From: Macrostomum lignano
Lineage: Eukaryota
Length of the DNA stretch: 64,000 nucleotides
NCBI GenBank assembly: GCA_002269645.1
Contig: NIVC01002037.1
Span: 1-64,000 of the forward strand
Reading direction: 5' to 3'
Shown here piece after piece: positions 561 to 31,559 of the stretch (its first letter is position 1; the number at the start of each line of letters is the position of its first letter). The translations under genes and the position numbers were made by a program. The notes under the pieces are model-generated. The model was given only the letters and a program-made list of their open reading frames with translations, made no database searches and was not told the DNA's origin.

Positions 561-589
561 TATTTGTTTTCTGAAGCAACATTTAACGT

Positions 590-2809: not shown

Positions 2810-3189
2810 GAATATAACTTACTACTCACAGTAGCAGGGACATCTTTTTCAAGAGCTTTGTCTAACTAATACTGGTATTCCGCGTAAAGTTTTTATTCTA
2901 TAATGTATTACCTGTAATGTATTTGTTTTTTGAAAAATATTCTTCCTGCAATAATGTTTAGTTAATTTGATCTGTAGAAGTACGAGTATAGCTCGTACTG
3001 AAGTTTAAATATATTACCTTTTTGACCAAATTGACCTGTTAAGCTGTCGGTTGAATATTTTAATAATTTTGTGCCAAAACTATAAGTTATGAAGTTATAA
3101 AGTTACTTAGCTACTTTTTTAAACTTACCAATCTAAATTCAGGGTGCCAAATAAGGTGTTAATGAGATCTTATTCTCTTGCAAAGGTGC

Positions 3190-3630
3190 TAAATCAGGTG
3201 TCTAAGGGATCTAGTTGGCTCACCAAATCAGGTGTCTAAGGGATCTAGTTGGCTCACCAAATCAGGTGTCTAAGTGATCTAATTGGCTCACCAAATCAGG
3301 TGTCTATGGGATCTAATTGGCTCACCAAATCAGGTGTCTAAGTGATCTAATTGGCTCACCAAATCAGGTGTCTAAGTGATCTAATTGGCTCACCAAATCA
3401 GGTGTCTAAGTGATCTAATTGGCTCACCAAATCAGGTGTCTATGGGATCTAATTGGCTCACCAAATCAGGTGTCTAAGGGATCTAATTGGCTCACCAAAT
3501 CAGGTGTCTAAGGGATCTAGTTGGCTCACCAAATCAGGTGTCTAAGTGATCTAATTGGCTCACCAAATCAGGTGTCTATGGGATCTAATTGGCTGACACA
3601 TATCAAATGTCTATGGGGATCTAATTAGCT
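3190..3630. repeat. 34-bp tandem minisatellite (caccaaatcaggtgtctaagggatctagttggct)n
   Basis: Period read directly (cacc at 3221, 3255, ...). Confidence 0.95.
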
Positions 3631-4793: not shown

Positions 4794-6059
4794 ATGCCTC
4801 GCTATCTTGTGTCTCTAGCCCTGCCTCTGCTGCTTCTCAGCAGCTGCTGTTTGCACGGTGAATCTTCTTTGCCGAGCTATGTCGATTTTCTTCACGACTA
4901 CAGCCGCACGTACGACTGTCGATGTCATACGGTTTCTTCGGAATACGACTTCTTGTGCGAGATCGTTAAAAAAGGATTAACGGCAGCAAATAGCAGCATC
5001 AGCTGCTCCAACCTGCCTACAAAAGTGATTGCTCACCTAAACATCAGCTGCTCCGGTTGCAGCAACTGCGTCTCAGTGAACATGCACGAGATGACTCGAG
5101 CTCATTATGACGATGACCAGCAGATAAACTTTTATCCGCCGTCGGAGATTTCACTGAACGATTGTCGGGTCAACAGTCTCAATATTAGAATGATGCAGTT
5201 GAGAGCTGAGAATGTCAGCGTCACTGAAGGCATGGAGATAGCACAGTTCGGTGTGCCACAACATCCGGGTGTTGGTGGCTACTACACCGTGAATGTCACC
5301 TACCCGACTGATTTCAACGCGTCCGATTGTTGGCTGACTTACCTGCACATCAGACGGAGCAGTATGTGGTACTTGCCCGCCTATGTTCTACACAAATGCC
5401 AGTACATTCGTAGTGTAAGCATCGTTGAGTCGCCGATCACGTGGGTATCGATGACTGACCTACTGGCCCTTCGGTCAATCGATAGCTTGACCCTGCGCAA
5501 CTGCAGCGTGAGAACGTTTGCCGATGACGCTTTGTCGAAAGCGCTGACGGCTCTAGATGAATATCTGCAACGAGTTGGTCCGCAGCCAGTCACTGAGAAT
5601 CCTCAAGTAGCAGAGGCTATTAAACGACTGCGTAAGATGAGGCAGGACTCCGGCAAACTGAACTTGGTAATCAATCTGTACGACATGATGGACTCATTCA
5701 ACATCAGCTTTTCGCTGCTATTCGGCTACCGAACCATCAGCCTGGGCAGTGGCTTTTCTCCCTCCGACATTCCGTTCGACGTAGCTCTCAGTTACTTGAA
5801 CTTGCAATACAATGAGCTGACCGAGATCCCTTTTTCTATCAGCATGTTTGGCAATTTAAATGCAATTGACCTTAGTCACAACAAAATACGCAGGCTGTAT
5901 CACAGCTGGCTGTGCTGGTACCCTCCTATACGCGAGGAAGACAAGGCAAACTCTACCAGACACTGCTATTGGTTCAGAGGATCCAGGCAGACTCTGAAAG
6001 TGCTGAACCTTTCTTACAATCGAATCAAACAAATTGGCGAAATTCAACCTTGGCACGGG
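4794..6059 (+). CDS. Toll-like receptor-like gene A, exon 1 (signal peptide, Cys-rich N-terminal region, first LRRs)
   Basis: MPRYLVSLALPLLLLSSCC signal peptide; LRRs LSYLNLQYNELTEIP, LNAIDLSHNKIRRL; donor GGG|gtaagg at 6060, at the same position as in paralog B. Confidence 0.85.
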
Positions 6060-6112
6060 GTAAGGTGCATTGAAAAAATATTATTCATATTTTCATTCGC
6101 AGGATGGCTGTA

Positions 6113-6365
6113 GGCACGTCTTCGGCGACATTGTCCCACAACCAACGCTGAGGCCATTCTGTTCATTCCACTGACTCCACAAGCGCTCCAATACTGTACG
6201 CAGGCACTCACTCATGCACTCGCTCACACAGGGTGTGAAGTGCACAAACCCCCCCCCCCCAACCATTTTTCGTGCACACAAGCCCCAAATGTATGAGGCC
6301 GCGCGCGGAATCGAACCAGGGGTCGTTGCGCGAGAGTCAGACGGGCTTACCGCTAGTTCTCTTGA
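6113..6365 (-). mobile_element. tRNA-derived SINE-like element in intron 1 of TLR-like A
   Basis: Perfect B-box GGTTCGATTCC on minus strand (6307-6317); body similar to copies at ~10430-10600 and ~50442-50570 (gcgacattgtc.cacaacc; cactca...acagg.gtgcacagc). Confidence 0.6.
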
Positions 6366-6546
6366 TAGCCTCGTATTGGGGTTTTATAATAAAACCTGTT
6401 GACAACCCACAATGTCTTTAAACGGACATTGTTCTAAATTCTACTAGCTGTTTCTATCTTCTCGGATACCTTTAAATGACGCCGCGACAATTGTTCTAGT
6501 AAAAAAAGATACCCAGCAAGTTTAAAACCCAACTCGTCACATCTAG

Positions 6547-8851
6547 GTGGCACTGGCCGAGCTGTACCTGCAGAATAATTTTATTGTGAGCATCAATTCG
6601 GACGCATTCAGCTATTCGCTGCTGTCAAAGAGCCTGCTGGCGCTTAACCTCGACGACAACCAACTGCCCTACATTCATTTAAAGTGCTTGAGCCGCCTGG
6701 AGACTCTGAGCATTCGAAATGGTGGCCTGGCAAATATCGAGCTCAGTTCCATTCCCCAGTCGGAAAGGCTTAGGTGGATCAATCTGACCAACAATTCAAT
6801 CAGCTCGATTTCCTACAACGCTTTCAACAATCGTCCAGCCTTGGAGACAATAGATCTAAGGAACAATAGCTTAGAAAATATGTATGCATACAGCTTCAAC
6901 ATGTCGGAGCGTCCAACCTTAAGCTCTCGTGTTGTCTTGTTAATAAGCGGGCAAAAGGTTAAAACGGTCTGCAACTGCTATCACGTCTACGCTTACATAA
7001 CAGAGGAAGAGACCGACTTGGAAAGGACTAACTACCACTATCCAGCGATCCCTAAGCACGAATTGGAAATTACGTCATGCCTATTCTTCTTGAAGGACGG
7101 TGCTAACTCAACTAGAAAACTAAGTGGTGCATCGTACCGCGAGTTCTTATGTGCCTTCAGTGGCGACTATGAACAGAAATTACCGAAAAAATACTGCGAA
7201 CAACCCCCACAATCTCAGTATGCGTCGTACGCAAATGAACCAATCCCCATAACAGGCCTGACTAACAGCACGTTTGAGTGTTGGGAGACTTGCGTACCCG
7301 ACTGCAGCTGCTACCACACGGCCAAGTGGGAGTTGTCCGACCTCAACTGTACCAATATTGATGTAAACATGGTCAGCATACTGCTGCGCATCCCTGTAAA
7401 GTACATGTACTTTTCCGGAATCAGGGAGTCCGACTATTTCCACAGAATAACAAATTCCACACTGAAATGGGAAACACCAAAACTCCGCGATGCCTTAGTA
7501 GTTTTGTTTTTCAACAATAGCAACATTCGCTACATCGAAGAGAATGCGTTCGTAGATAAAACTTCGATAAAGTTTCTATACTTGGACGACAACAGGCTTG
7601 AAAAAGTACCGGCAAAAGCTTTCTGCTCACCGAATTCAGATCTGATTCGGCTAAGTCTATTGAGAAACAACCTAACTTGGATTGACCCCTATTTGTTAAA
7701 TTCTAGCTGTCTTCCAAATTTAAACGAACTCAAGATCAGCAGCAATCCGTGGCACTGTCAGTGTAACGAAATGTGGACAAGTCTTCACAAATCTCTAATT
7801 AGTGTGGCGCGCACAACGCAAGTTGTCCCAGATTTCGAAAGTATGCGTTGCCAAGTGGATCCGGCAATTATTGAAGCCTGCGAATTGAACAGATGGAATG
7901 ATGCCTGGCGACTTGATTGCCAAAAAATTCTTTTAAGCAATGGATCTCGCGACTATCCAGTGAGCGATGAGGGCGGACTCGTCAGGGTGTGCGAGCTTAT
8001 AGCGGACTCGGCAGCACAGCAGTGAAGGCAGATCGTCCTGATCATTCTGTCCTCATTATTCGGTCTCGCGCTGCTCGGTTTCGCGGTGCTCGCTGTCCGC
8101 CGTCGACACCGACTGCTGGCCGTGGTTCGAGTCCTCATCCTCCTCAAGTACCAGAGCAGTCGGCGACTGCAGCAGCAGACATCTCGGGACTCGCTGCCGT
8201 ACGACGCGATGCTGTGGGCGTCGGACAGAGACCAGGACTGTCTGGTCGACGTGCTGAACTGCGTGCGCAGCGCCTCGGGCGGAGACGAGCTCGAGCTGTG
8301 CGTTCCGGAGAGCTTCCTCTACTCGGACCTGTGCTCCTGTCCGCTCACCTACTTTGACTGTCCGGCTGAGGGAGCCAAGTTCAGCGGCAAGGTGGTGGTG
8401 GCTTTGTCCGAGAGGTTTCTCGACACCCAGTACCTGGCTCTGTGTCAGGTGATTCGAGATCTCGACAGCTTAGGTCGGAATCCGTTCAAGGACATCGTGT
8501 TTCTGCGCCTGAGCTCGCGCAGAGTGTCGCTTCAGCGCCAGAGACAGCTCGGACCTGAGGACGTGGAGGCGTTCCACACTCTGCAGAGAATCCTCGCAGG
8601 GAGCGACATCGAATACAAGTCCGTTGACTGGGAATACAGACTCATCGAGCGCATTCGGAACCGAGATCCGGCCGCCGTTCTCGTGTTTGACTCGTCTGTT
8701 CCGCCAGAGACTTCAGCGGCGGCCACGCCCGCGGTAGCTGACCGCCTTGATATTACCGTCGGGACCGCATCGGAGCCTGAAGAGCTATTAGACCTTCCAG
8801 GCGAGGGGCAGCCATTAATTGTGGACGTTGAGCAGACAATAGATTTTATAA
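6547..8851 (+). CDS. TLR-like gene A, exon 2 (LRRs, internal LRRCT/LRRNT Cys cluster, LRRs, NPWHCQC LRRCT, in-frame TGA at 8023-8025, TM helix, TIR-like domain 1)
   Basis: Acceptor ctag|GTG at 6547; ORFs 6547-8025 and 8086-8904 are in the same frame; TM IVLIILSSLFGLALLGFAVLAV follows the stop; donor A|gtaagt at 8852 (phase 1). Confidence 0.8.
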
Positions 8852-8959
8852 GTAAGTACACAAATTATTGCGGCACTGTTCTGAAATCGGCTTCAAAACG
8901 ATGAGCTCGGAATTTCCACCATTACCCATATAATCTATAATCACATAACCAATATAAAG

Positions 8960-9372
8960 GAAGCCGCACCATCCTGAGCACGATTCGGGATTGGCCGCCG
9001 TTCCACTCGGACAAAGTGCCGGAGGTCTTCATCCTGTCCGCTCCTGAGTCCGCCTCTGACTCCGAGTCCCGAGCCGACCCAGATTCGAGCTCGAACACCG
9101 TCGTCGAGCTCATCGTTCGTCGCCTCCAAGGCGTTCGGCTCGGCACCAACGACGCGGCCCTGGCTGCTCGCTGGCCTGACAACTTCGAGGGCGCCTCGCC
9201 AGCCGGCCGCATCAACAGCTTCCTGATGAAGCGAACTCGCCAGTTCGTGCTGCTGCTCAGCAACGGCCTGCTCAGCTGGCTCAGAGACGAGGCCGAGCTG
9301 CAGTGCGAGTTCCAAGCCTTCCTCGCTGCGAACTCGTTCAGACGCCGCCTGCTGGTAGTTCAGGTTGGACAG
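8960..9372 (+). CDS. TLR-like gene A, exon 3 (TIR-like domain 2)
   Basis: Phase-1 acceptor aaag|GA at 8960; EVFILS...FVLLLSNGLLSWLRDE...RRRLLVVQ is TIR-like; donor CAG|gtgaga at 9373. Confidence 0.65.
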
Positions 9373-9409
9373 GTGAGACTGAGTGAGCAGGTGTGAGTTT
9401 TGACTAGCT

Positions 9410-9855
9410 TTGCCTCACTGCTGTGTGAGTGAGACAGCTGTACCTCACTGCTGTGTGAGTGAGACAGCTCTTCCTCACTGCTGTGTGAGTGAGACAGCTG
9501 TACCTCACTGCTGTGTGAGTGAGACAGCTCTCCCTCACTGCTGTGTGAGTGAGACAGCTCTCCCTCACTGCTGTGTGAGTGAGACAGCTCTCCCTCACTG
9601 CTGTGTGAGTGAGACAGCTCTCCCTCACTGCTGTGTGAGTGAGACAGCTCTCCCTCACTGCTGTGTGAGTGAGACAGCTCTCCCTCACTGCTGTGTGAGT
9701 GAGACAGCTCTCTCTCACTGCTGTGTGAGTGAGACAGCTCTCCCTCACTGCTGTGTGAGTGAGACAGCTCTCTCTCACTGCTGTGTGAGTAAGACAGCTC
9801 TCTCTCACTGCTGTGTGAGTGAGACAGCTGTACCTCACTGCTGTGTGAGTGAGAC
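9410..9855. repeat. 30-bp minisatellite (ctgtgtgagtgagacagctctccctcactg)n in last intron of TLR-like A
   Basis: About 15 near-perfect units. Confidence 0.95.
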
Positions 9856-9884
9856 ATACAGTATCGATCTTTATTCACTCGCAG

Positions 9885-10043
9885 TTGGACAGCCGGTCGA
9901 GAGCTCGCTACCGGGCGCTGGCGAATCAGCGACTGGACGGCGGGGAGTCCGGGCCGGCGACGAACTGGTTCGACATGAGCGCCGATGACTGCGACGTCGA
10001 GGCACTGGGGCTGTGGCTGGACGGAGTGCTGTACAAAAAGTGA
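9885..10043 (+). CDS. TLR-like gene A, exon 4 (end of TIR2, LDSRSRARYRAL...WLDGVLYKK*)
   Basis: Acceptor ttcactcgcag|TTG, phase 0; the four exons total 4143 nt, a multiple of 3. Confidence 0.65.
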   Translation: MDSRSRARYRALANQRLDGGESGPATNWFDMSADDCDVEALGLWLDGVLYKK

Positions 10044-10429
10044 CTCCTGAGCATGAAACTTTGATGAAGCGCACGAAAAGATTGATAAGCAGTAAGAATG
10101 TTATCCCAGTTCGACTTGTAGAATTTAAATATTGAAAAATTAAAAGTGCAATAAATTGCAACCGAATATCACTTTTTCATCGTAAATATTGACCTTAAAA
10201 ATATACAACATGTGAATACGACTAGTTGCTTCACGTTGACTAAGAGCCATTGGCCGAAAAAGAAGAAAATGCTGGGACTTCCTGCTAAACACAGGCAAAG
10301 AGTTGCAAGGCCGCTATCACCCTGGAAGGAAACCGTTAGCCACCAGATTACTCCTTGGTCAAGCGTCCATCAGCACTGACCTACTGTACACTGGGACCTT
10401 ATTGTGTTAGTTATAGGCAGGGGCTGTGT

Positions 10430-10745
10430 GTACCCTGACGCACTTTAAGCGACATTGTCACACAACCGGCGAGAGTCATTACTGCCCATTTCGCCGATTC
10501 CCCTGAGCAGGCATACAAGCTCGCGGATGCGCACGCAGTCATACGCACAGGCACACACTCACACAGGAGTGCACAGCAGCCCTAACTTCATTTATTGTTA
10601 GGCATGTACACTTCACTATGCCTTGTGAGTTGGCCCTCAATGACGTTAATTACACGAGCAGAGCCAAGCCGAAATTCCAATTTAGCTCCAAAAATGTGAC
10701 TGCACTTGTGAATCGAGACTGGGCTGCTGGCACTGCCAGGACCTC
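10430..10745 (-). mobile_element. Diverged copy of the same SINE-like family
   Basis: Shares gcgacattgtcacacaacc and cacaggagtgcacagcagccct with the other copies. Confidence 0.45.
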
Positions 10746-11089
10746 AGCGCCAATGAAGCTGCTCAGCAAGTCCTCCCGCCATCACGCCAATCACGGAACA
10801 AAAAGATACCCTTTGAAGTGCGCCTTGCATAGTGAAAACAGGCGACAATGTCTCTTAAGCTATCATCCTGAAAGTGCACAAAGTGCATGACATTTGCAAG
10901 GGGTCTTGGATGCAACAGTCCCGGCCGTTAAATGTGTTAAATTGGGTTTCCAATTAGAAGGAGCAATGAACTGACCTACCAACTAGTGTCTCTTTGTTGT
11001 CAATATCGAAGTAATAGCCTATTAAAAGGACAATGATGCAACTGGGGATCGCACGTCCTTCTTTACTAACTCATTCAAGCAATCCCCAG

Positions 11090-11640
11090 ACTAACCTTCA
11101 AGCAATCCCCAGACTAACCTTCAACCAATCCACAGACTAACCTTCAAGCGATCCCCAGACTAACCTTCAAGCGATCCCCAGACTAACCTTCAAGCGAGCC
11201 CCAGACTAACCTTCAACCAATCCACAGACTAACCTTCAAGCGAGCCCCAGACTAACCTTCAACCAATCCCCAGACTAACCTTCAAGCGATCCCCAGACTA
11301 ACCTACAAGCGAGCCCCAGACTAACCTTCAACCAATCCACATACTAGCCTTCAAGCGATCCCCAGAATAACCTTCAAGCAATCCCAGACTAACCTTCAAG
11401 TGATCCCCAGACTAGCCTTCAAGTGATCCCTACACTAACTAACCTTCAAGCGATCCACATACTAGCCTTCAAGCGATCCCCAGAATAACCTTCAAGCAAT
11501 CCCAGACTAACCTTCAAGTGATCCCCAGACTAGCCTTCAAGTGATCCCTACACTAACTAACCTTCAAGTGATCCCCAGACTAGCCTTCAAGTGATCCCTA
11601 CACTAACCTTCAAGCGATCCACAGACTAACCTTCAAGCGA
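11090..11640. repeat. 23-bp minisatellite (cttcaagcgatccccagactaac)n
   Basis: Unit read directly. Confidence 0.95.
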
Positions 11641-14219
11641 ATCGGAGTTGATTAAACGCTCATAAGAGCAAAGCGTGACTATGTCAGGGGCAGATGAAAG
11701 CTGGTACATGTAGCTCGTAGATGCAGCTATATCAAGTATCACAAAGTCAAAGGTTAGTGTTGGCGCCAGCGTTCTTGATAGCTATAGCTTTTAAACTTCG
11801 TTTTACAACCTAAATCTGACAAATCTGACAATAAATGAATCGGTGGTATACGACATATGAAATTTTAAATTTACCGTCCTGCTGTCTTACAGTCTTTAAA
11901 CCAACTGTTTTTACGATTGCACGATGCAAACTTTGTTTTAGATTGTTTTCGCTATCAACCCGTTTGTATTGCTAAAGTCTATGCATTTGCCAGCAAGGAT
12001 AGAGCCTGTGTCAGTTCGGAATTTCAACCTTTGCCAACCGGTTTGTTGTCAGCCTTCTCTCATGACACAAAAAACTGCAGAAATTTTTCTCTCTTCGACT
12101 GGATACTATCCGAAAAATAGTTGCATACTAGATGACAAAAAGAGTTTAGAAGAAAGCATCTATGCTTCCTAACCCTCGTTTTGCAGTATGTTAATAAAAA
12201 AGTGTTCTGAAAACGCCACTAGCTGTACGATATTATGAAGCAGAATGTATGCGCACGAGCTGTACAGACACAAGAAACGGCTGAAAGTTCCTTTTTTGTT
12301 TTTTATTTAAATCTACCCTGTCTGCAGGGTACTGGCAGACTGGCCAGTACCCTAGGAAGGAAACTGGCAGGGGGTATACTCGTATTATACTGCAATTGTC
12401 TCTTAGACTGCACCGTCTATATATAATTTTCAACCATTATAGAACTAGCATAATAAGAATATGTAATTACATGTACTTGTATTCGGTTTGGCTCTTCTCC
12501 AACTGCTGCATGAACTCGATATGCATGTAAAATCTGAGATGGAGTTTAAATCTGACCTGCTAAATTCAAGCCTGATATTGTAATGGACATTATGTATCCT
12601 GTGCGACAACATTATCACAATATAAGTTAATTTAGTGCTTCAATTATGCTAGCACGACTCAGCGGGTATGATGTTGCCCCAGGCGTCAGGTCACTTGCGC
12701 GGGTGATAAGCATGCAGCCCATAATCAAACGAAGCTTGCTTTCTGGTTTACAAGGACAGGTAGTGCTGCTGGAAGAAGACTTCAGCCTCATCAGGCATTG
12801 TGGTGAAGGGCGTTGTCCGCGCAGAATAGGGAGTCTAGCTACTGCTTCAGATACTCTAACGGCCTCGTTGCTCTCTGGATGTGTGCAAATGTATTTAGTA
12901 CATGTTGAAGGCCCAAGTTCTCTCTGTGAAGTGTCTGTATTGTTCTCTGTTGATGAACATTGCAGCTTGAGATCCAGGCTCTATGTACGAGTTGGGCATA
13001 GCCAACAAGAAGATTCAAGTCCATTTAGACTTAACTTGTACATGTACGTCATTCTCGCGTGACATCACGGCATGGTTGTACATATTTTTCATCAAGTTGT
13101 ACCTCGTTAGGATTTCGTTTTGGGTTATAGGGTTAGGATATTAGAGTTAGGGTTCATAGGATAGAGTTTAGGCTAAGCACACGTAAGCTATAGTAGGGGT
13201 TTGGTTTGACAGTCAACTCGCGGCTGTCAGATGTCGCAGACTCAGTGGAGTGGTTCGATGGCTTAATTCTGTAGATGCTATTACGGTCGTACTCTTGATT
13301 CCAAAAGTAAGTAGACCACGATTTATCGTTCAATATCTGTAATGTTTATTAGCTAAATACAGCTTTTCATAGTCTTCTATTGGCTATCGAATGTAGATCT
13401 GCATCTGCGCCAGAAATATTTAATGACGCTAGCTACAAACTGTTCGATTGTTGACCTGCCCGAGACCTACTGAGCTGTTTTTGCCATCGCTCAGGCTGCA
13501 GCTATTTTTTGCGTAGAACGCTTGTTTTTTCAGGAAATTGTCTACGGAGCAGTAGGAGCAGTAATTGTGCGTTCATATTCGAGCAGGGTTTTTTTAAGAC
13601 GAGCCTGTCCTCCGCAGGCACGCAATGACTGTACAGTTCCGTGCATGCACAAGAGAGATTAATAGCTAGTGTCTGTCGTGATGTGCTCAGGTGTGCTCAG
13701 GTTTATTATATAGGCTCTCCAACGCATTGCTACGCATACTTAATGATAAATATATGCAGGAAAGCGAAAAATAAATTCTGCAATAAGTGTCTGCTATACG
13801 AGTAAGTAACTTTTTCCAGGTAAGTATGAGTATTTTGTCTGAAACTTTTGGATAGATAAGCGAACAGAAAAATATTTAATCTTGAAACATGCCTCGTTTA
13901 GTGTTTTCCTTAGCATGATGCAGCTATGCAAATTTTCAAGTCAAGAATCTTCCCGCTTGGTTATTACTTATTATCCATATGCTGACGGCTTTTGATGGTT
14001 AGTGAAACGGTTTTTGCAAGCTCAAAATTTGAAATCGTCGAAAAAGTGTTGCTAAGCTAGCTCCAGGATTCGAGACTTCGATGTTGTTTCTTCGATTTGA
14101 TGTTTCGATATTGTCAAAAATTTTGTCTGGAATGATGAGAAATTCATGTCTACCCGACAATTGACTGCCACAGATTGACTGCCAACCCTAATTTAAAAGC
14201 AAGCCAAAATTGGCACTGG

Positions 14220-14535
14220 CAGCCAAATGTCACTGACAGTCAAGTGTAACTGACAGTCAAATGTCACTGACAGTCAAATGTCACTGGCAGTCAAATGTCA
14301 CTGACAGTCAAATGTCACTGACAGTCAAATGTCACTGACAGTCAAATGTCACTGGCAGTCAAATGTCACTGACAGTCAAATGTCACTGACAGTCAAATGT
14401 CACTGACAGTCAAATGTCACTGACAGTCAAATGTCACTGACAGTCAAATGTCACTGACAGTCAAATGTCACTGACAGTCAAATGTCACTGACAGTCAAAT
14501 GTCACTGGCAGTCAAATGTCACTGACAGTCAAATG
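14220..14535. repeat. 17-bp minisatellite (gtcactgacagtcaaat)n
   Basis: Unit read directly, about 18 copies. Confidence 0.95.
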
Positions 14536-16319
14536 ACGATATTCCGTGAAATTTCCAGCTTGTGAAAGATTCCAAATTCTTGTGATTCCGAAACTTGTGT
14601 GGAGGGCAAAACATCGAGATAACTTTACTTTATGCGACTTAAGCTTGAATGAAAACATTTAATAAAAATGAAACATATAATTTTAATACTGTTAACAAGG
14701 ACCACTGTAGTAGACGGACTCGGCACTCACGAACCATGGAAAAAGTTTTGAAGGCTGATTTTTTAAGTTTGATGCTGTCTCTTCAGAAACAGATATTAAG
14801 ATGATGAGTTTGCATCCCTACTGCTCATTTGTCTGCCTGTTGCTTTCTTCTGTGATGCATTTTGAGTTCGCAGTAGGCGATTAACTATTTCAAGGTGAAC
14901 ATTAGAGCAGCAGGTACTTAGCCCCCATAACACAGTATCCATATCTGCACATACTGCCTGTACAGATGTTACAGACATACGCGTGGTAAATTTTGAAAAA
15001 TCATTAAGGTATAAGCGAATTTTAAAACAATTATGGCATTGTACGAGATGGATGTCTCGTAGTTGAAAAGTCTTACGTTTAATTAGTCTGTGGTACTGGG
15101 TAGCCATTTATTGGAAATAGCTAAGTGTACTAGAAAAAATTGACAGTAAAATGCATGAAAATGAGCAAAGCAGAAATAAAAGGCAAAATGTGAGATCAGT
15201 AGAAACTTGGTATCAAAAATGTGACATTCTGGGAAACAAAAATAAATTGACTGAACTCTGAAACAATGCAGAAAAGGTAACTGTAAGGCTATTTATAACT
15301 AATACGGTAACACAATAATCATCTTTCTAAATCTGACTAAATTGCTAAATTTGGAATTGCACACCAACAAATAGATTGGGTGGCTGTACTGAAAACGGTG
15401 TGGAATTTCATTTTACTGGTGCGGAAGCCAGTGAGGAGGGGAGTGAGGGGATGGTGGGTAGGAAGGTTGAGAGTAGTAGTGTAGAGTGAGGGGATAGTTA
15501 GGAGGGAAAATGTTACCTGACTGAGCGCATGCAACTATGTTGATGAAATGAAAACAGGTCGAACGGACCAAACTAATAAATAAATAATAATAAATGGATT
15601 AAGAGCTCAGCTTACCATCAAACTCAAATTCCTTCAATCTGTAGTGCATAGATACAGTCTACAGATACAGCAAATCTAAGTACTATGTTTATACAATTTT
15701 CACAGAATATTATAATGAGTTGTAAATATTTCCTATCACTATATATAGGCCCTAGTTGTGTTGAACTGCAATTGTTTAGGCTAGGCTATGTTTAGTTGAG
15801 AGAACTAGGACTACAATCATTACAATCAACACAACTTATTAAACCATTAATTTCCAATAAGCAATAAACTGAAGAGATACAAGTTATTTATAAAGCAAAA
15901 TTGCATTATACTTAGTGATCTAGGTCAATTAGTAGAGTATTCTAAGCTAACATCTGGCTGATTATAGTTCTGGTTTCATTCTGACAAATCAAAACATTAG
16001 TTTTGTTGGTACTAAGCATTAACATTCAATACACGATTATTACAATGCTGTGAAATATAATTAAACCCTCAAAACGCATACAAAGTTTGAATATGGCTAC
16101 ATATTATTGGCTTAGTGAAGAAAGCGAGTAGCAGAGAATTAAAAAATATGGTCGCACAAACAGACACAAAGCGTACGGAAAATCAGCCTTCAATTTTTTT
16201 CCGTGGTTCGTGAGTGCCGAGTCCTTCTACTACAGTGGTCCTTGATCAAAAACACACAAAAAATGACTGTTAACTTCTCCTTCGATTTACAATACCTTGT
16301 CATAGTACACAGCCAAGCG

Positions 16320-17630
16320 ATGCAAGCACCGACAGAAAGTCTCATACTGCTACTGGCGTGCACTCTGACGGCGCTCCTGCCGGCTGCTGCAGCTGCTCAG
16401 CCTCAGTTGGATGACGATCTGAACAAATACATTATACTGCCGAAAAACTTCAGTCTAACGCACGAGTGCTGCTGCGAGAACATGATGAACTCGCCCAGGT
16501 TTGACTACTTCTGCCAGGTGTCTGAAAAACCCTACCCGAATGCCAGCTGCATGACTGGTTGGGTAGACTGCTCCGATCTGCCGGGCAGAATCGTGTACAG
16601 CTTGACGATAAACTGTACATCTTACCCATCTGTGACTGTCAATCTGCGAGCTCTCACCGTGGCTCACAACTCAAGCAGCATCGAGAACGAAATCAGCTAT
16701 CCGCCACAACTGGTACATCTAGTGAACTGCAACGTAAACGGTTTCGAAGTTGGAATCCTTGAGCTGCCAGCTGAAAATGTCTCCCTCGATTACGGCATGG
16801 AAGTTGCACCGTTTGGAAGTCCGGATAGGCCGGGCGTTGGCGGTTACTACACTGTTAACGTCACTTATCCGCGTGAATTCCGCCAGGCTGACTGTTGGAT
16901 GGTGGAATTGAACATTGAAAATGCAAGCACTCTTTGGTATCTGCCGTCCTACCTGTGTCACAAGTGCAACTCTCTCAAGAACATCTTCATATCTAATTCT
17001 CCAATCGAATGGATCTCGATTCGCGATGTTCTCTCTTTGCATAACGTACGAAGTTTTTCTCTGACCCACAGCCGCCTAAAGTACTTTGCAAGCGACGCTC
17101 TGAGCACAGCTATCAAGCTATTAGATAGATACCTGGAAGCTGGAGTGCAAACCGGCTGCATCAATGACACTGAAGCCGCGATCAAAGCTCTAAACTCAAT
17201 ACGCAGCCGCACAGGACGGTTGAGTAGCCCCACCCAGCTATACGACACGATGGGCACCGCCAATATCGACTTCACCCTGCTATTTGGCTACAGATTGAGA
17301 AGCGCTTTCTCGGGCAATAAAACCGAGCCCGCCTGCGACATGCCTGGCAAGATGGCCCTGACCGATCTCGATTTGTCTTTCAACGCTTTGACGGATATAC
17401 CTTTCTCAATTAGCATGTTCGATCAGCTGAACCGGGTCAATCTTAGCCACAACAGAATCCGCAGCTTGTACCACGGCTGGATGTGCTGGTATCCGCCAGT
17501 TCCCGAAAACCAGAAGAACACTTCAAACCGGCACTGCTATTGGTTCAGAGCGGCTCGAGCTAGTCTGAAGGTCCTGGACTTGTCATTTAACGAAATCAAT
17601 ATGATCGGAGAGATACAGCCTTGGCACCAG
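16320..17630 (+). CDS. Toll-like receptor-like gene B, exon 1
   Basis: ATG 16320, MQAPTESLILLLACTLTALLPAAAAA signal peptide; colinear with A exon 1; donor CAG|gtgagc at 17631. Confidence 0.85.
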
Positions 17631-18508
17631 GTGAGCTAATTATTAATACTAAATTGTTGGTTATCATTATACAAAGCAATTGAAAGGGAGTCATTGAAGT
17701 TTGTGTTGGTTGTGGCCGTTTCAAGACCCCGGATTCGTAAAGTGTTGGAACACGATGACACTGATATCGCTCACTCTGCGATCCTATCGATATGAGTAAT
17801 AGTCGAACCGGTCGATAAATTGAACCTTCGCAGTAATCAGACACCGTTTTATGGCTCAATTATCTTTTCATTTAGCTCTTAGCTGACTACGTAAAAAATT
17901 GTTACAGAATGATCAAACAGATTTTTAGAAACCCATGAGTCGGGCTGTGTCATTTTAATGGTTTTGAGCAAATACTCATTTAAGTAAAAAAGATATAAGC
18001 AAAATAGTTTTTGTCTCGAAAAAAGGAAAAACGTGCTTCTCCCTACTTTTTTCGGTTAATTCTGCCGTCTAATATTTTCAAAGAAACGCAATTTCTTCCC
18101 CACACTTGGCTGGGCCGTGTCTGTCTACGGTTAAATGCTTTTTCATTTCCTTGGCCAGGCCAAAGAAATGATTGGCTAGGCCAAAGAAATGAGCTCTCAG
18201 CTGGAGAATTCGGCCCAGAGAAGGGAAGAAGCGGAAAGTAAAGCTCTAAACCAAACTGACTGCAATCGATAGCTTTTCGGGCCGGTGGACTAGAAACGCC
18301 GAGACATCTTATCCAGGTCTTTTCATGGGGCTTCCAGTTGATAAAATGAGGATTTCAGGTTAACATAAGTCTCTAGAATGAAGCTTTGCTGTGGGCTCCA
18401 ATCATATGCATGTTTAACTTGAAAAAAATCAATGAGTTAAGTGTCTCAAAGAATTTTAATATGATTTTTCAGAAATATTGTTCTCTAAAATTCACCTCTC
18501 CGCTTCAG

Positions 18509-20756
18509 GTGGCGTTGTCGTATCTCATTCTCCGCGGCAACAGAATAATGAGCGTCAACCCGGATGCGTTCGCTTACTCGCCATTAGCCACGAGCTTGCT
18601 GAATTTATATCTGGATGAAAATCTTTTGTCGTATTTTCACCTGGAATGCCTGACCCGACTGGAAGTCCTGAGTCTCGAGGGCTGTCGAATCGCGAATATC
18701 GAGCAGGAATCGCTGCCCAAGTCGAAATCGCTCAGGGAAATCAATCTCGATAGCAACAGAATTTTCGCCATCGCTCCGGGCGTTTTTGAACAGCTTGAAA
18801 AGCTTGAGTTTGTTCGGCTACATCATAACAGGCTGATGCACTTTTATGCGAACAGTTTCAAAACGCCCCCAAGATCGACCTTGGCGTCCAGAGTCATCAT
18901 ACACATTGCCAACCAGAGCGATATACCCATATGCGACTGCAGCCACGTATATAAGAAGATACTGCAGGATGAGGAGTTTGGAAATCCCCAAAAAAGCTAC
19001 GTTTATCCGAGGATTTTGCCAGAAGATATGTCCACCGAGTGCCAGTTCTTCTCCAGATTCAGCTCAACCAGAGTGGTAAAGAAACTAAGCGAATCAAATC
19101 AAAGTGAGTTTCTATGTGAATTCCAGGACAATCAAAAGCACAAGCTGCCCTGGAATTACTGTAACGAAAACGTCACTATTATGGGTCGAGAAAAGTGCTT
19201 TGTGAAGTGCATCTACGGCTGCCGGTGTTACCACGATGACGGATGGGATATTTCTGACCTGGACTGCACCCCGGGCAATTCCACAGTCACCACCGACCTG
19301 GTTAAGATGCGATTCGAATTCCCAATCAAGTACATGTTCATGGCCGGACTTAAGGACTCGGAGTTCTTCCGGCACGTCTCCAAGGGATCATTTAAATGGT
19401 TGAACGAAAGCGATTCAAATGAATTACTGTTCTTGCAGCTGAATAATAGCAACGTCAAATATGTTGAGAAAGATGCGTTCGCAAATTTTGAGAACATAGT
19501 TGTTATTTACCTGCACGACAACAATATTACCAGCATTAATCCGAGCCCTTTTATTGGAAACTGCTTTTTAAATAAAAATCTAAACCAGATCACGCTGCAT
19601 AACAACAGAATGAACTACATCGACCCGGCAATAATTAATGGAACGTGTCCTGTGGGCCTTTCAGGTGTGAGCTTAAGCGGCAATCCGTGGCACTGCTCCT
19701 GCCATGGAAAATGGATCGAGCTCCACAAAACACTCATCCAGGACTCTAGAAAAACACAAACAGTATCGGACTTCCGAAATATGTATTGCACAATTGACGC
19801 GTCTATAGTTGGTGCATGCACGGAGAACCGTGAAAATCTGCAATGGAGTGACGTATGCCAAAATGCAAATGATACGGCTAATTACCCAGTTGCCGACGAA
19901 GGCAGACTTGTCAAAGTTTGCGAGCTCATAGCGGACTCGGCAGTGCAGCAGCGAAGGCAGATCGTCCGGATGATTCTAACCTCAGTATTCGGTCTCGCGC
20001 TGCTCGGTGTCGCGATGCTCGCCGTCCGCCGTCGACACCGACTGCTGGCCGTGGTTCGAGTCCTCATCCTCCTCAAGTACCAGAGCAGTCGGCGACTGCA
20101 GCAGCAGGCATCTCGGGACTCGCTGCCGTACGACGCGATGCTGTGGGCGTCGGACAGAGACCAGGACTGTCTGGTCGACGTGCTGAACTGCGTGCGCAGC
20201 GCCTCGGGCGGAGACGAGCTCGAGCTGTGCGTTCCGGAGAGCTTCCTCTACTCGGACCTGTGCTCCTGTCCACTCACCTACTTTGACTGTCCGGCTGAGG
20301 GAGCCAAGTTCAGCGGCAAGGTGGTGGTGGCTTTGTCCGAGAGGTTTCTCGACACCCAGTACCTGGCTCTGTGTCAGGTGATTCGAGAGCTCGACAGCTT
20401 AGGTCGGAATCCGTTCAAGGACATCGTGTTTCTGCGCCTGAGCTCGCGCAGAGTGTCGCTTCAGCGCCAGAGACAGCTCGGACCTGAGGACGTGGAGGCG
20501 TTCCACACTCTGCAGAGAATCCTCGCAGAGAGCGACATCGAATACAAGTCCGTGGACTGGGAGTACAGACTCATCGAGCGCATTCGGAACCGAGATCCGG
20601 CCGCTGTTCTCCTGTTGGACCGAACAGCGGAACTGGAGTTACCGACGGCAGCTGCTGGCGGTTCGGAAAGACCAGCCGCTACAGCAACTGCGGAGCTTCC
20701 TGATCTTCCTGACGATGAGCAGGCGCTGATTGTCGACGTTGAGCAGCCAGTTACGA
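18509..20756 (+). CDS. TLR-like gene B, exon 2 (LRRs, Cys cluster, LRRCT NPWHCSC, TM, TIR-like domain 1), uninterrupted
   Basis: Acceptor cttcag|GTG; open frame through TM IVRMILTSVFGLALLGVAMLAV and YDAMLWASDRD...KVVVALSERFL; donor A|gtaagt at 20757. Confidence 0.85.
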
Positions 20757-20979
20757 GTAAGTATAACTGCCAGAGCTTTTTGTAGTCTCACTTGCCCCTT
20801 TAGTTGTTAATTTCGTTCCGAAAATTAAACTCTGATACGCAACTCTAGAGTACTACACGTAGCTCGTACATTGAGTTGAATTAGACATTTTCTTATCTCG
20901 AGAAACTCATGATGCATCTAAAGAAACAATTTTTATTTGTAAAGCTCCAAGCTAACGTTTTAATCAACATATTCAAAAG

Positions 20980-21398
20980 TTCGAGCCGCCGCCGCTCCCG
21001 GTGCGGCTGTCAGTGACTGGCCACCGTTCCACTCGGACAAAGTGCCGGAGGTCTTCATCCTGTCTGCTCCTGAGTCCGCCTCTGACTCCGAGTCCCGAGC
21101 CGACCCAGATTCGAGCTCAAACACCGTCGTCGAGCTCATCGTTCGTCGCCTCCAAGGCGTTCGGCTCGGCACCAACGACGCGGCCCTGACTGCTCGCTGG
21201 CCTGACAACTTCGAGGGCGCCTCGCCAGCCGGCCGCATCAACAGCTTCCTGATGAAGCGAACTCGCCAGTTCGTGCTGCTGCTCAGCAACGGCCTGCTCA
21301 GTTGGCTCAGAGACGAGGCCGAGCTGCAGTGCGAGTTCCAAGCCTTCCTCGCTGCGAACTCGTTCAGACGCCGCCTGCTGGTAGTTCAGGTTGGACAG
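20980..21398 (+). CDS. TLR-like gene B, exon 3 (TIR-like domain 2)
   Basis: Phase-1 acceptor caaaag|TT with upstream gctaac branch-like site; donor CAG|gtgaga at 21399. Confidence 0.65.
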
Positions 21399-21429
21399 GT
21401 GAGACTGAGTGAGCAGGTGTGAGTTTTGA

Positions 21430-21610
21430 GTAGCTTTGCCTCACTGCTGTGTGAGTGAGACAGCTCTCCCTCACTGCTGTGTGTGAGTGAGACAGCTCTC
21501 CCTCCCTGCTGTGTGAGTGAGACAGCTCTCTCTCACTGCTTTGTGAGTGAGACAGCTCTCCCTCACTGCTGTGTGAGTGAGACAGCTCTCCCTCACTGCT
21601 GTTTGAGTGA
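21430..21610. repeat. Same 30-bp minisatellite in last intron of TLR-like B (about 6 units)
   Basis: Unit matches 9410-9855. Confidence 0.9.
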
Positions 21611-21634
21611 GTATCGATCTTTATTCACTCGCAG

Positions 21635-21808
21635 GTGGACAGCCGGTCGAGAGCTCGCTACCGGGCGCTGGCGAATCAGCGATTGGACGGCGGGGAGTCC
21701 GGGTCGGCGACGAACTGGTACGACATGAGCGCCGAGGACTGCGACGTCGAGGCGCTGGGGTTGTGGCTGGACGGAGTGCTGTACAAAAAGGCTGATTTAC
21801 GTAAATAA
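21635..21808 (+). CDS. TLR-like gene B, exon 4 (ends ...WLDGVLYKKADLRK*)
   Basis: Acceptor ctcgcag|GTG; the four exons total 4152 nt, giving a 1383-aa product. Confidence 0.65.
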   Translation: MDSRSRARYRALANQRLDGGESGSATNWYDMSAEDCDVEALGLWLDGVLYKKADLRK

Positions 21809-22499
21809 TATTTAATTTTAAATTGGACATCCATGGCACATTTTGACTTGAATAGCTCGTACACTCTAAGAAACTAGAAAACGTAGACTTAAATTCTGAA
21901 GTGTCATATAGACTATTTACATGTACTTATCCGTATATGGTATACGTACTTTAGTTGTTGAGGATTCAAACCTAGGCTACTATTAGTAGCTAGTAGAAAT
22001 CTTCTCCACGAAGAAATAGAAGAATTTATGCATTGAATCTGTGCCATAGACCTATTTTTCGTATTTTGTACTTTATTTCCAGCTTTTTGACAACGGTATC
22101 TGGCAGACGTATCCGGAAGACGTTTGTCTTACTGTTTGTTTGGTCGTGAGCTTTTTTGTCTTTTCTATTTATTCATCGTGCGCCTATTTTTGTTTCGGAA
22201 AAATCTTTAATCTTTTTTTTTAGTTTTAATGCCTTTAGGTTGTTGCTGTCTTATTGTAGAGATCATCACTCGAAAACTTTTATAGCGAGCGTGTGAATTG
22301 GTTATAATTTTCTGGTAACTATGCCATTTTTCTATTTTTCTTAGCTAAAGTACTAATCTTAGTTAGCTAAAAAATATGTACTTCCCTAAACTTTTAAATA
22401 TCTGTATTAACAGAGTGTTTTTCATCGTTATATATCGACAAATTATCCAAAAAGGTCGTGAGAACTTTTAACTTACGCCTGTGTACTTCTGAATGATAC

Positions 22500-24810
22500 A
22501 TGCAGCATATGAAGGAAGGTCTCAGTAGTCTATGGCTCTGAGCTGGCAGAGGTTCTCGGACCTGAAAACGTCGGAGAGGTCCGCGTTTGGGCCGAGGTAG
22601 GTGAGCCTGTCCGTAGGTGAGCCTGGGGCGTTCACAGATGAAGTGCTCCGCATTCTCAACACCGGAGGGGCAGAATGGGCATTCCTCATTGCAGATTTTC
22701 CTCTTGAGGTAACAACCGTGACCCGAGAGAGTCATGGTCACCGCCCTGATGTCCCTGCGGTTGAGTCCAAGTAGGGCCCCTCGAAGGGCGGTGGTAAGAC
22801 AGGGGACAGCCGCAGGGATTGCCGGTAGTCTGTGGCGTTAGAGGCATGCAATAGTGGGCTCAGCACCAGGCTTACGAGCTACGGTCTGCGATCCTAAACA
22901 CCTGCACCCCCTCTATTCTGGTGCAGGAATGGCAGGAGAACTCTCTCCAAGCTGACTCACAAGCCGACTCAGGGGTTCACGTTCCGCATGTGTTCAAGGC
23001 AGCTCTAGGGCTGCTGGACTGACTGGGCTCCGGCGGTGGCAACCCATCCGTGGGCTTGGCCGCTTTGGGTACGGGCTCCGCCCGGAAGTGAACCTGTGCG
23101 TATCAGGTACCTCTGGCCACGGCTCTGAGGAACAGGTATCACCCTCTGACTTTAACAGGGTATGCGGCTAGCCCGCAGGCTCCGGGGACAGCTTTTTGTA
23201 GCACCTTGCTGATGGACCTTTGGTTCGGCCTCTGGTTTCTCGAAGCCGGGCTCTTAACCGGGGAGTTTCTCGGTTGCTAGTGAGCCGGTAAGGGTAGCCC
23301 ACCCCCCGATCGCTACCTCTTGGCCTGGCTGTTGGGTTTGGGTTGCGGCGCAGCGTCTTCTCATCTCTAGCCCCCACTCGCCTTTCAGCGACTCATGGAG
23401 TATTCATTTACCTCCGCCACGTCCGAGGCTGCTGGAGCACCAAACAAGGTTGGTACCGCGGCTTAGCCGGACATTCGCAACACCGGAACCTTGGGTGACT
23501 CTTAGTCAGCCCCTACCGCCACTCAGGACAATACCGAAGTAGCTGGACAACAGGACGGCGGACCTCAGACCTCTAAAAAGAAGGCCCTTAGAATTGCTCG
23601 CTACAAAGCTTTTCTCCAGCCCAAAGTGGAGGAACGGAGGAGTGCAAAAGCCGCCCCTCCGGCCGCCTCTGAGGAGGGTGCCGGTAACTCTGCGAATCTC
23701 GGAGAGTGGAGCCGACATCCGACAAGGCCCCTCCCGTGGTGGGACCTCTGCCCGTGTGGAAACTCCCACGGCCGCGGAGAGATCCAAAGCGGGGGACGCT
23801 GGCCAACTCTCCGGAGGAGCACCTCTCCGGTGCTTTGATGCCACGCACAGGTTGATCCGAGTCGTGACAACGGGGGCCACAGACAGGGGACCAGTAAAAG
23901 AACCGGTCGAGCCAGCCTTGGCCAGGCGATCGGCCAACTTGTTGTCGGGGAGGCCCGAGTATCCCGGGATCCACCTTAGGGACACATTGTAGGAGGCGCT
24001 GAAGAGGTTAGGCTGCGCGATGCAGTCTAGGACTGTACGCAAGCAGGTGGTGGTACGTTCAAGTGGATCGTCGCTTGACTGTCTGAGTGGAGGATAATCT
24101 CCTTCCCCCGAACACGCTGATTGTACGGCTCCATGGCGCAGGAGCTGATGTCGAGAACTTCGTTCTGGAACAAAACGGTAGAGCAGGTGCCGATTTGCTG
24201 GGAGAAGGTCTTCGCGGTTCTCCCTCCAGACACGATGCAGTAGCCGTAGCCAGAGGCGGAGTTGATTTGGGACCCGTCAGTGAAGCAATGAGTTTCACGG
24301 GCTTTCCAGTTGTCTCTTGCTTCGTGACGTGGTGGAATGCTGGTTTTCAATTTGAGCGAAGGACAGAGCGAGAACGGGATTGCATCCGAGAGGGTCGACA
24401 GGCCTCCCACTGCTTTAATGTACGGCCGGAGGTTCCGCTTTCTGAAGGCGAGCAGACGGCGGGTGGTCTTCATTGCCTCCCTTCTGACAAAGAGGTCATG
24501 GGGGAAGGTCCAGGAAGGTACTCATGCCAGATAAGGGCGTCATGATAGCTCGACAAGCCCGGCCCTGCACCCTGTTAAGAGCTTCATGAACCCCTTTCAC
24601 CTTCAGGGCACTGTTCGAATGAAGCTGGCAAAAGAGATGCCGGTCTCATAATGGAAGTGTACATCCACCAGAGGCGGCGGGGTGAAGCCACAGCTATAGC
24701 GCCGAGCAAACCCAGGAAGACTTTGAGCCGGCGAAGTACTGCAAGATTTGCCCTCGCAATTTTCACCTCCATTACTTCATTGAAGCATCGGGTGGATATC
24801 AATGCATAGG
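22500..24810 (-). mobile_element. Degenerate 5'-truncated non-LTR retrotransposon (RT thumb, RNase H, C-terminal CCHC; R1/Loa/I-like), interrupted by an oppositely oriented GC-rich segment ~22870-23820
   Basis: RRLWWMYTSIMRP (thumb); FTDGSQ...FQNEV...HSDSQA and LRWIPGYSGLPDNKLADRLAK (RNase H); LNRRDIRAVTMTLSGH...CPFC..ENAEHFIC (zinc knuckle); several frameshifts. Confidence 0.85.
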
Positions 24811-31163: not shown

Positions 31164-31199
31164 AAAATAATTTTTTTATTAAAACATCTTAAAAACAAA

Positions 31200-31555: not shown

Positions 31556-31559
31556 TGGG

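Follow-up and report, generated by a model that had tools for sequence, protein, structure and literature searches.

The window analysed in this study comprises positions 1-64000 of the Macrostomum lignano contig NIVC01002037.1 (assembly GCA_002269645.1), and its segment 4794-21808 carries two same-strand four-exon paralogs, gene A (4794-10043) and gene B (16320-21808). The locus very probably holds a tandem pair from a small, lineage-restricted family of protostome-type (P-type) Toll-like receptors (TLRs), in which the first domain of the cytoplasmic tail is a TIR domain and the second is a domain specific to the family. Gene B is predicted to encode a type I membrane protein composed of a signal peptide, an irregular cysteine-containing N-terminal cap, a first block of leucine-rich repeats (LRRs), an internal LRRCT/LRRNT, a second LRR block, a membrane-proximal LRRCT, one transmembrane (TM) helix and two globular cytoplasmic domains. 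The second of these domains would be a conserved alternating beta/alpha domain peculiar to the family, perhaps a second TIR. In the signalling mechanism that we infer, together with its adaptor partners, a ligand on the LRR ectodomain would bring two tails together, and the first TIR domain (TIR1), perhaps aided or regulated by domain 2, would nucleate a homotypic complex with cytosolic TIR adaptors. Gene A has a nonsense codon before the TM helix and would give a secreted 914-aa LRR-only protein.

Structure and annotation of the two genes

Both genes lie on the forward strand, and all six of their introns are bounded by GT-AG and have phases 0, 1 and 0 at homologous codons. The homologous junctions read QPWH(G/Q)^VAL (^ marks the splice site), a linker position ahead of DWPPFHSDK, and VQVGQ^(L/V)DSR. 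The preliminary description of this stretch had claimed equal intron positions and phases in both paralogs, which agrees with these models. By tblastn of gene B against gene A, exon 1 matched at E 2e-104 (45% protein identity between the first exons) and exons 2-3 at E 0.0, and two blocks of their DNA share 96-97% identity; on sequence comparison, the paralogy of the two genes is far beyond chance.

Exon 1 of gene B (16320-17630) has a start that matches GenBank PAA61381.1 and encodes the signal peptide (16320-16400), the N-terminal cap and the first LRRs. Exon 2 (18509-20756) extends from LRR block 1 through the linker and contains the internal Cys cluster (18932-19267) between LRR blocks 1 and 2, the LRRCT (19694-19858), the TM helix (19961-20026) and tail domain 1, the diverged TIR (20111-20608; aa 972-1137). 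Exon 3 (20980-21398) encodes the end of the linker and tail domain 2 from position 21015, and exon 4 (21635-21808) encodes the end of that domain and the stop codon at 21806-21808. The resulting translation of 1383 aa is identical, residue for residue, to PAA61381.1 (P0078), and the length previously given for the spliced B protein, as well as the limits 4794-21808 of the pair, were exact. Alternative exon 3 acceptors at 9017 in A and 21043 in B were dropped for 8960 and 20980 (63 nt upstream in B), because the adopted acceptors reproduce PAA61381.1 exactly and include the (D/E)WPP motif that is conserved in a distant paralog.

In gene A, exon 1 (4794-6059) is an open reading frame (ORF) encoding the signal peptide, the Cys-rich N-terminal cap and the first LRRs, with a GT donor after CACGGG in phase 0. 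Exon 2 (6547-8851; donor ATAA^GTAAGT, phase 1) encodes LRRs, the internal Cys cluster and the LRRCT, and 3' of an in-frame stop codon it still contains the segments equivalent to the TM helix (8032-8097) and TIR1 (8182-8679). Exon 3 (8960-9372) supplies the end of the linker and the first two thirds of tail domain 2; its acceptor, tataaag^GAAGCC, is also used by the older model P0003, and its donor is CAG^GTGAGA in phase 0. The final third of domain 2 lies in exon 4 (9885-10043; stop 10041-10043), and an AATAAA is found after this stop at 10150-10155.

The GenBank annotation of the assembly derives from genome-guided transcripts built with StringTie and TACO together with a de novo transcriptome, with ORFs called by TransDecoder and units cut at trans-splice and poly(A) sites (PMC5730564). 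This annotation gives gene B as a four-exon coding sequence (CDS) of 1383 aa with exons 2, 3 and 4 joined, and gene A as a 914-aa product. The question raised in the preliminary description, namely whether transcripts end without exons 3 and 4, was answered at the level of the assembled model: the assembled transcript joins exons 2, 3 and 4. The entries carry automatic labels, which are 'TIR domain-containing protein' and, for some fragments, 'Protein toll' in UniRef and 'hypothetical protein' at NCBI. The region of gene B recurs on at least two more near-identical contigs, i.e. in at least three near-identical genomic copies, as expected because the genome is partly duplicated.

Ectodomain and membrane topology

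Gene B encodes exactly two hydrophobic segments (Kyte-Doolittle >1.6, 19-residue window): aa 5-27, the signal peptide, and aa 921-945, the TM helix (delimited more narrowly as aa 922-943), which is followed by RRRHR. The ectodomain contains 36 Cys, 20 N-glycosylation sequons and about 13 simple LRR motifs (LxxLxLxxN), with the internal Cys cluster at aa 579-690 and NPWHCSC at aa 829-835, and the tail has 438 aa. All the parts that had been read from the letters, that is, the signal peptide, LRRs, internal cluster, NPWHCxC, TM helix and a tail of about 450 aa, are therefore present in gene B. In Pfam, gene B matched LRR families only, with LRR_8 at E 7.2e-25 (87 bits against a cut-off of 27, in five stretches) and LRR_4 at E 2e-11; the Pfam LRRNT and LRRCT models gave no match on gene B.

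In BLASTP, a single colinear alignment of 790 residues (E 2e-24) connects gene B with a Tollo-like receptor (P0008); it begins in the LRRs, passes both Cys clusters and the TM helix, and reaches into tail domain 1. The aligned pairs include CDCSHVYK with CDCSMEWL, FLCEF with FLCPY, NPWHCSC with NMWSCEC, and TM helix with TM helix, and the gene B segment CFVKCIYGCRCYHDDGWDISDLDCT is aligned in the region of the internal Cys cluster, between the FLC and NPWxCxC pairs. Cys 579, 581, 615 and 640 of gene B, together with Cys 655-690, align with the LRRCT/LRRNT cluster of P0008 (CDCSMEWL..FLC; ..VDC). In the tail, YDAMLWASDRD...ELELCV...SGKVVVALSERFLDTQY of gene B is paired with FDAFVSYSKKD...IRLCLHYRDL...SRRTILVISENFLKSEW of P0008. 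Arthropod Tollo/18w-type TLRs are the best full-length relatives outside M. lignano, and chaoptin-like LRR proteins match the LRRs only.

A TLR was defined, following Orus-Alcalde et al. 2021 (PMC8609888), by the combination of LRRs, a TM helix and a TIR domain. Gene B has the LRR domain, the signal peptide and the single TM helix, and it has more than one Cys cluster (the internal LRRCT and LRRNT, and the membrane-proximal LRRCT), as in P-type or multi-Cys-cluster TLRs; the reading frame of gene A stops ahead of the TM helix. By its predicted layout, gene B is of the protostome-type, multi-Cys-cluster TLR architecture. The preliminary description had assigned this type on the internal LRRCT/LRRNT cluster, and the 790-residue colinear alignment bears the assignment out.

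Tail domain 1

Domain 1 was compared with a reference TIR profile built from the TIR domains of 25 TLRs. With its filters off, HMMER scored it at 15 bits (E ~5e-7, one target), and the alignment starts at position 4 of the profile. The family also has a paralog on another contig (P0069, BOX15_Mlig015932g1, 1357 aa), and with a three-sequence alignment of the family, local hhalign gave a probability of 95.2%, E 2.8e-8 and a score of 52.0 across 99 columns, which extend from box 1 as far as betaD. The best control scores were 22.1 in 100 column shuffles and 29.7 in 40 block shuffles, the latter of which keep local hydrophobic patterns. Moreover, the global hhalign score was 44.2 against a shuffle maximum of 20.5, and in the reciprocal search, a domain-1 hidden Markov model (HMM) recovered TIR domains from other TLRs, in register and at up to 19.6 bits.

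The elements kept in TIR1 are box 1, the betaC 'S..VVV.LS.RFL' core, betaD and the Trp of box 3. Box 1 reads YDAM in A and B and FDVF in P0069, and at box 3 an invariant DWEY falls on FWEK in the global hhalign alignment. The elements lost are the RDxxPG of box 2 (the BB loop) and the Glu of WCxxE. At the position of RDxxPG, VPESFLYSD is found in A and B and VHRGSGFMQ in P0069; in the alignment, the segment LELCVPESFLYSD of both A and B stands opposite the reference box 2, LCLHYRDLPVASG, as does MDYAVHRGSGFMQ of P0069. Judged by these profile comparisons, tail domain 1 is a genuine but degenerate TIR that lies beyond Pfam detection. The TIR1 string of the preliminary description, YDAMLWASDRD...KVVVALSERFL, is present, and its identification as TIR1 is upheld by an hhalign score above all shuffles.

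Tail domain 2

Tail domain 2 comprises about 180 aa encoded by exons 3 and 4 (aa 1199-1383 in B) and is joined to domain 1 by an acidic, Ala-rich linker. In the assembled transcript model, both tail domains belong to one mRNA: the frame is continuous over the GT-AG junctions, the CDS equals the transcript-derived GenBank protein, and the same layout is found in P0069. An exhaustive phmmer search with the tail among 1.84 billion representative proteins returned M. lignano proteins only, namely the B/A group, a chimeric old model (P0068) that includes a partial duplicate, copy C, described below, and P0069. A word-indexed search with the 444-aa tail had returned nothing, not even the identical entry, which is a limitation of the index, and was superseded by the exhaustive phmmer search; the word-indexed family-profile search likewise missed P0069, a member of its own profile, and the nulls of such searches for the C-termini of long proteins are untrustworthy.

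P0069 matches the whole tail at 28% identity and has the same overall architecture, with the same domain order and about 32% identity to B in domain 2 (28-33% across the paralog comparisons). WPP, V..L, RRL, PD.FE, GAS, K.TRQFV.LL, W, RR.LV and YR.LA are invariant across domain 2, and their spread is consistent with a folded domain. As for the introns of P0069, one lies at the phase-0 site of intron 1 of A and B, one at a site of its own within TIR1, and one at a phase-1 linker site within one codon of intron 2 of A and B. Domain 2 is, on this comparison of paralogs, an old and constrained part of the receptor family and not an annotation accident, because it is conserved in the ~32% identical P0069 at another locus with an equivalent phase-1 intron.

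The nature of domain 2 is where the readings of the tail diverge. It is close to an even call whether gene B is a true twin-TIR receptor, in which domain 2 would be a TIR fold more diverged than TIR1 and the tail would resemble that of bivalve twin-TIR Tolls. The preliminary description had proposed such a second TIR (TIR2), and the strings that it named, EVFILS...FVLLLSNGLL...RRRLLVVQ, are present and span exons 3 and 4 as stated, but the TIR fold itself did not find the same support. By hhalign against the TIR profile, domain 2 gave a probability of 7.7%, P 0.0045 and a score of 23.2, the only aligned stretch being TRQFVLLLS..LLSW...RRRLLVVQVG, which falls on betaC-alphaC-betaD in the correct register. 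This score narrowly tops, by about one unit, both the 100 column shuffles (maximum 22.1) and the 40 block shuffles (mean 15.4, sd 2.7, maximum 22.1), and in global hhalign, 2 of the 40 block shuffles reached the real score. Speaking for a TIR fold are the global alignment of domain 2, which is colinear over 148 columns with a z of ~5 against column shuffles, the low-confidence AlphaFold2 models, which alternate strands and helices (E-H-H-E-H-E-H-H), the betaA-betaC and betaC-betaD spacings, which by inspection fit a TIR, the acidic residues at W+3 and W+4, which resemble WCxxE, and the existence of tandem-TIR Tolls in molluscs. Against it, HMMER scored domain 2 at 4 bits on the TIR profile, the domain-2 HMM did not favour TIR domains when run on 134 retrieved proteins, and hhalign found no similarity between domain 2 and its neighbour TIR1 (P 0.66), hence no support for an origin of domain 2 by internal duplication. 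In addition, Pfam, PADLOC and NCBIfam gave no usable matches on either tail domain, and the tail, the TIR1 profile and the domain-2 profile met only chance matches among PDB sequences (designed coiled coils, YpkA and obscurin); these PDB nulls say little on domain 2, because TIR1 was missed as well.

The other reading, for which we put the probability just short of even, is that domain 2 is an unrelated, family-specific C-terminal module with a regulatory or docking role, so that the tail would have a single TIR; a counterpart in role would be the C-terminal extensions of the Drosophila Toll family. This would suit the fact that every TIR test of domain 2 was negative or marginal and that the exhaustive phmmer search found no homolog of domain 2 outside M. 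lignano. It would also suit the behaviour of domain 2 as a separable cassette, with a conserved phase-1 intron boundary, that has been duplicated alone as copy C. However, the in-register match to the TIR betaC-alphaC-betaD core tops all local shuffles, and both the alternating beta/alpha pattern and the length (~165-180 aa) of the domain fit a TIR.

Several results weigh against the view of the locus as a P-type TLR pair with a TIR in domain 1. Gene B has no match to Pfam TIR PF01582 or PF13676 at E <= 10; P0069 has a PF01582 match at the right place in its TIR1, which in itself speaks for a TIR but with its 12 bits (E 0.18) stays below the cut-off of 21.3, and no family member reaches the threshold of Pfam TIR or TIR_2. 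Searches of PDB sequences by phmmer and hmmsearch with the tail and the TIR1 profile yielded no TIR. Canonical signalling by TIR1 is doubtful on its sequence, because it lacks box 2, on which characterised TLRs depend to recruit MyD88. The 1.84 billion representative proteins yielded no ortholog from other species, and constraint was therefore judged from paralogs only. AlphaFold2 produced no usable three-dimensional model, with a pLDDT of 34.9 for the whole tail without an alignment and of 37.9 (about 38) for domain 2 with a four-sequence alignment, and Foldseek with both low-pLDDT models found no match at E <= 0.001 (TM-scores ~0.2). At such model quality, the AlphaFold2 and Foldseek outcomes appear uninformative and are not evidence against a TIR fold.

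The stop codon in gene A

Gene A has an in-frame TGA at codon 915 (8023-8025), two codons ahead of the TM helix, where gene B has CGA at the equivalent site. The transcript-based GenBank annotation ends the gene A product at this TGA, leaving 914 aa of LRR-only protein, and gene A as assembled is predicted to yield a secreted LRR-only protein of this length. The earlier claim that each paralog encodes the full protein therefore stands for gene B, which is intact, and falls for gene A, in which the TGA had been overlooked. Downstream of the stop, the TM, TIR1 and domain 2 exons of A are still open and are 98% identical to those of B.

A rescue of the stop by a 45-nt GT..AG skip (7987-8031), as in the older model P0003, was considered and deemed an annotation device, because the homologous 45 nt of gene B are plainly coding and the GenBank model stops at the TGA. 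An intact A-type copy was also sought in the duplicate contigs and none was seen; one of these (L003) begins downstream of A, and the other (L004, NIVC01000230.1) has an N gap over exons 1-2 of A. In positions 1-3300 of the latter contig, A-type exons 3-4 were observed upstream of the B copy, with unrelated sequence and a 255-N gap in place of A exons 1-2.

Homogenised tails and copy C

The tails of the two genes are far more alike than their ectodomains, in which the exon DNA is barely alignable and protein identity is 45-56%. Two homogenised blocks were delimited. The first covers the juxtamembrane segment, the TM helix and TIR1 (7954-8691 in A, 19883-20620 in B), is 95.7% identical without gaps, and has a proportion of synonymous differences (pS) of 0.03 in its cytoplasmic part and 0.30 in its juxtamembrane part. 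The second covers exon 3, intron 3 and exon 4 (8989-10040 in A, 21015-21790 in B) and is 92-97% identical including the intron, the flanks of which are conserved like the exons. Between the blocks, the linker is 59% identical and intron 2 is 49% identical. Over the tails as a whole, 20 of 1104 nt differ (1.8%), with pS 0.036, a nonsynonymous proportion (pN) of 0.012 and pN/pS 0.33.

This pattern points to gene conversion or a recent exchange of both blocks, rather than to selection alone, because intron 3 is equally conserved; such an exchange would also explain why the tail of A is still open past its stop codon. The GC content is 0.58 at 8001-10000 and 0.55 at 20001-22000, the tail-coding stretches, and about 0.45 in the ectodomain exons and surroundings, and the GC richness of the tails fits GC-biased gene conversion of the homogenised blocks.

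Copy C is a partial duplicate on the reverse strand (37298-36089), with a homolog of intron 2 (37298-37212), an intact exon 3 (37211-36807; 97% identity by tblastn), a minisatellite (36760-36300) and an exon 4 (36271-36089) with deletions of 15 nt and 1 nt. Its homology to A begins exactly at the boundary of exon 2 and intron 2 of A. An acidic ORF at 42203-42577 on the same strand has no Pfam match and ends in a GT donor. The chimeric older model P0068 joins an equivalent of this ORF, in phase 0, to the exon 3 acceptor of copy C. From these two parts, a putative stand-alone 'domain 2' protein of about 315 aa is possible.

Intron 3 of both genes contains a 30-bp minisatellite, detected by TRF with 15 copies in A (9406-9856) and 6 copies in B (21432-21611); copy C has about 15. 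Each unit, AGCTCTCCCTCACTGCTGTGTGAGTGAGAC, includes GTGAGT, a consensus-like 5' splice site, and an inverted repeat CTCAC...GTGAG. By its sequence, the minisatellite might supply cryptic donors downstream of the true exon 3 donor.

Other readings of the locus

It is possible, although unlikely, that the family no longer signals through TIR domains, either because its members are adhesion or guidance LRR receptors, as Toll-6/7/8 partly are, or because both genes are decaying duplicates in a recently polyploid genome. The loss of RDxxPG and of the WCxxE Glu from TIR1, the nonsense codon in A and the extensive recent duplication in the M. lignano genome would be expected in this case, and Tollo/18w and chaoptin-like proteins are the closest relatives of the ectodomain. 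Nevertheless, the 1383-codon frame of gene B is intact in at least three near-identical copies and in an assembled transcript, paralogs at only ~30% identity have kept both tail domains, and the pN/pS of the tail is below one, a value that comes from the 20 differences only.

That exons 3-4 are a separate downstream gene, e.g. a spliced-leader trans-spliced, polycistronic one, with the receptor ending in intron 2 at 8902-8904 in A and 20783-20785 in B, is very improbable: the older-assembly model P0002 does read into intron 2 and end in ...VTSKYNCQSFL at the stop 20783-20785, an ATTAAA follows at 20824-20829, 39 nt past that stop, polycistrons make up about 7% of the transcriptional units in M. 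lignano, and copy C is the cassette without exons 1-2, but the GenBank CDS joins exons 2-3-4 despite a pipeline that cuts at trans-splice and poly(A) sites, the frame runs through the phase-1 junction not only in A and B but also in P0069, which is 30% identical, an in-frame ATG is lacking from exon 3 up to the middle of the domain (the earliest Met is that of FLMKRT, past the putative betaA), and the conserved (D/E)WPP lies upstream of any possible internal start. Read-through of the exon 2 donor in gene B, with this stop and ATTAAA, would give a possible short isoform without domain 2.

Other features of the window

Gene B is closely followed by the remnant of a retroelement at 22394-24042 on the reverse strand; this remnant includes an ORF with a sub-threshold RNase H match (E 7e-4) and a neighbouring ORF with a Cys/His-rich motif, and the same peptides occur inside the chimeric model P0068. 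Two long Ser/Gln/Pro-rich ORFs without a Pfam match are located at 28735-34254 (forward strand), where GenBank has a 904-aa product from 28744. An exon at 50813-51331 (reverse strand), probably of a gene for a Zic-family transcription factor, encodes a His/Gln-rich stretch followed by a zinc finger of the Zic type (zf_ZIC E 2.5e-7). Part of a mariner-type transposase was found at 57052-57594 (reverse strand), with Pfam Transposase_1 at E 1e-14 and a helix-turn-helix, and 60713-61225 (forward strand) is an exon of a gene for thiamin pyrophosphokinase (TPK_catalytic E 5e-16, TPK_B1_binding E 4e-14).

The whole window is unusually dense in minisatellites, with 39 TRF rows in which the repeat unit measures 9-69 bp and occurs up to 74 times. 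Examples are found at 1-1359, 3191-3630, 11065-11640, 14214-14535, 31206-32394, 39368-40723, 43530-44194, 46716-48103 and 59899-60685, and some of the minisatellites create long artefactual ORFs on both strands.

Relation to TLR surveys and known systems

Orus-Alcalde et al. counted no TLRs in the M. lignano genome with a screen that applied a TIR HMM first, and inferred a loss in Platyhelminthes (PMC8609888). Saco et al. and a review of planarian immunity agree that Platyhelminthes are without TLRs (PMC10279657, PMC7958881), and the latter review reports MyD88 and SARM in planarians, with no LRR-linked TIR. A search of the available literature library found no paper describing TLR-like genes in Macrostomum. 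The present family is missed by the TLR censuses, because the screens apply a TIR HMM first and this TIR scores below the threshold. On sequence grounds, its members are TLRs by their architecture and by the homology of ectodomain and TIR1, but they are not TLRs by the census criterion of a match to the TIR HMM.

For TLRs, at least in Macrostomorpha, 'lost' would accordingly become 'diverged beyond recognition'. That a flatworm said to lack TLRs has cryptic ones is more notable than the twin-TIR point, which, if true, would extend a rare architecture from molluscs to flatworms. The preliminary description had guessed at a lophotrochozoan lineage, in keeping with the organism being a flatworm. 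The family is a concrete candidate for the upstream receptor of the flatworm MyD88, SARM and TRAF components, and M. lignano is amenable to RNA interference and transgenesis, so that the candidate is testable. GenBank and UniProt already list the proteins with automatic names, and the novelty lies in the interpretation. A wider scenario, which we regard as tentative and rather unlikely in its entirety, is that flatworms kept TLRs in the form of a P-type family of the early-branching macrostomorph M. lignano with tandem TIR-derived domains, both too diverged for standard HMM screens, in which copy C might encode a stand-alone adaptor or homotypic partner, A would be a new soluble decoy, and gene conversion would keep the tails uniform while the ectodomains diverge.

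Among known receptors, the arthropod P-type Tolls (Tollo, Toll-6/7/8, 18-wheeler) have the same order of parts as gene B and are colinear with it from the LRR block to the TIR. The shared features are the CDC... LRRCT, FLC, the C.C.C.CYHD..W....DC LRRNT, the second LRR block, NPWxCxC, the TM helix, the TIR start (Y/F)DA and S..x(V/I)xVLSxxFL. The M. lignano proteins differ from these Tolls in that their identity to them is 21-25%, their TIR is below Pfam detection and without box 2, their N-terminal 340 aa are only loosely LRR-like, they carry an extra conserved C-terminal domain of ~180 aa, and no ortholog was found outside the species.

Twin-TIR Tolls are known from oyster loci (named by Gerdol et al. 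2017) and from the freshwater mussel Hyriopsis, which has a Toll with tandem TIRs, both as cited in PMC5845394. Compared by description only, these bivalve receptors resemble gene B in the LRR ectodomain, the TM helix, the two tandem cytoplasmic domains and their spiralian origin, but both of their cytoplasmic domains are recognisable TIRs, whereas the second domain in M. lignano is not demonstrably one. Gene A, in turn, resembles LRR-only 'TLR-like' proteins and soluble TLR ectodomains: its 914-aa product has a signal peptide and a complete ectodomain and no TM helix or TIR. It differs from them in that a single nonsense codon has this effect in an otherwise full-length receptor gene, the downstream exons of which are open.

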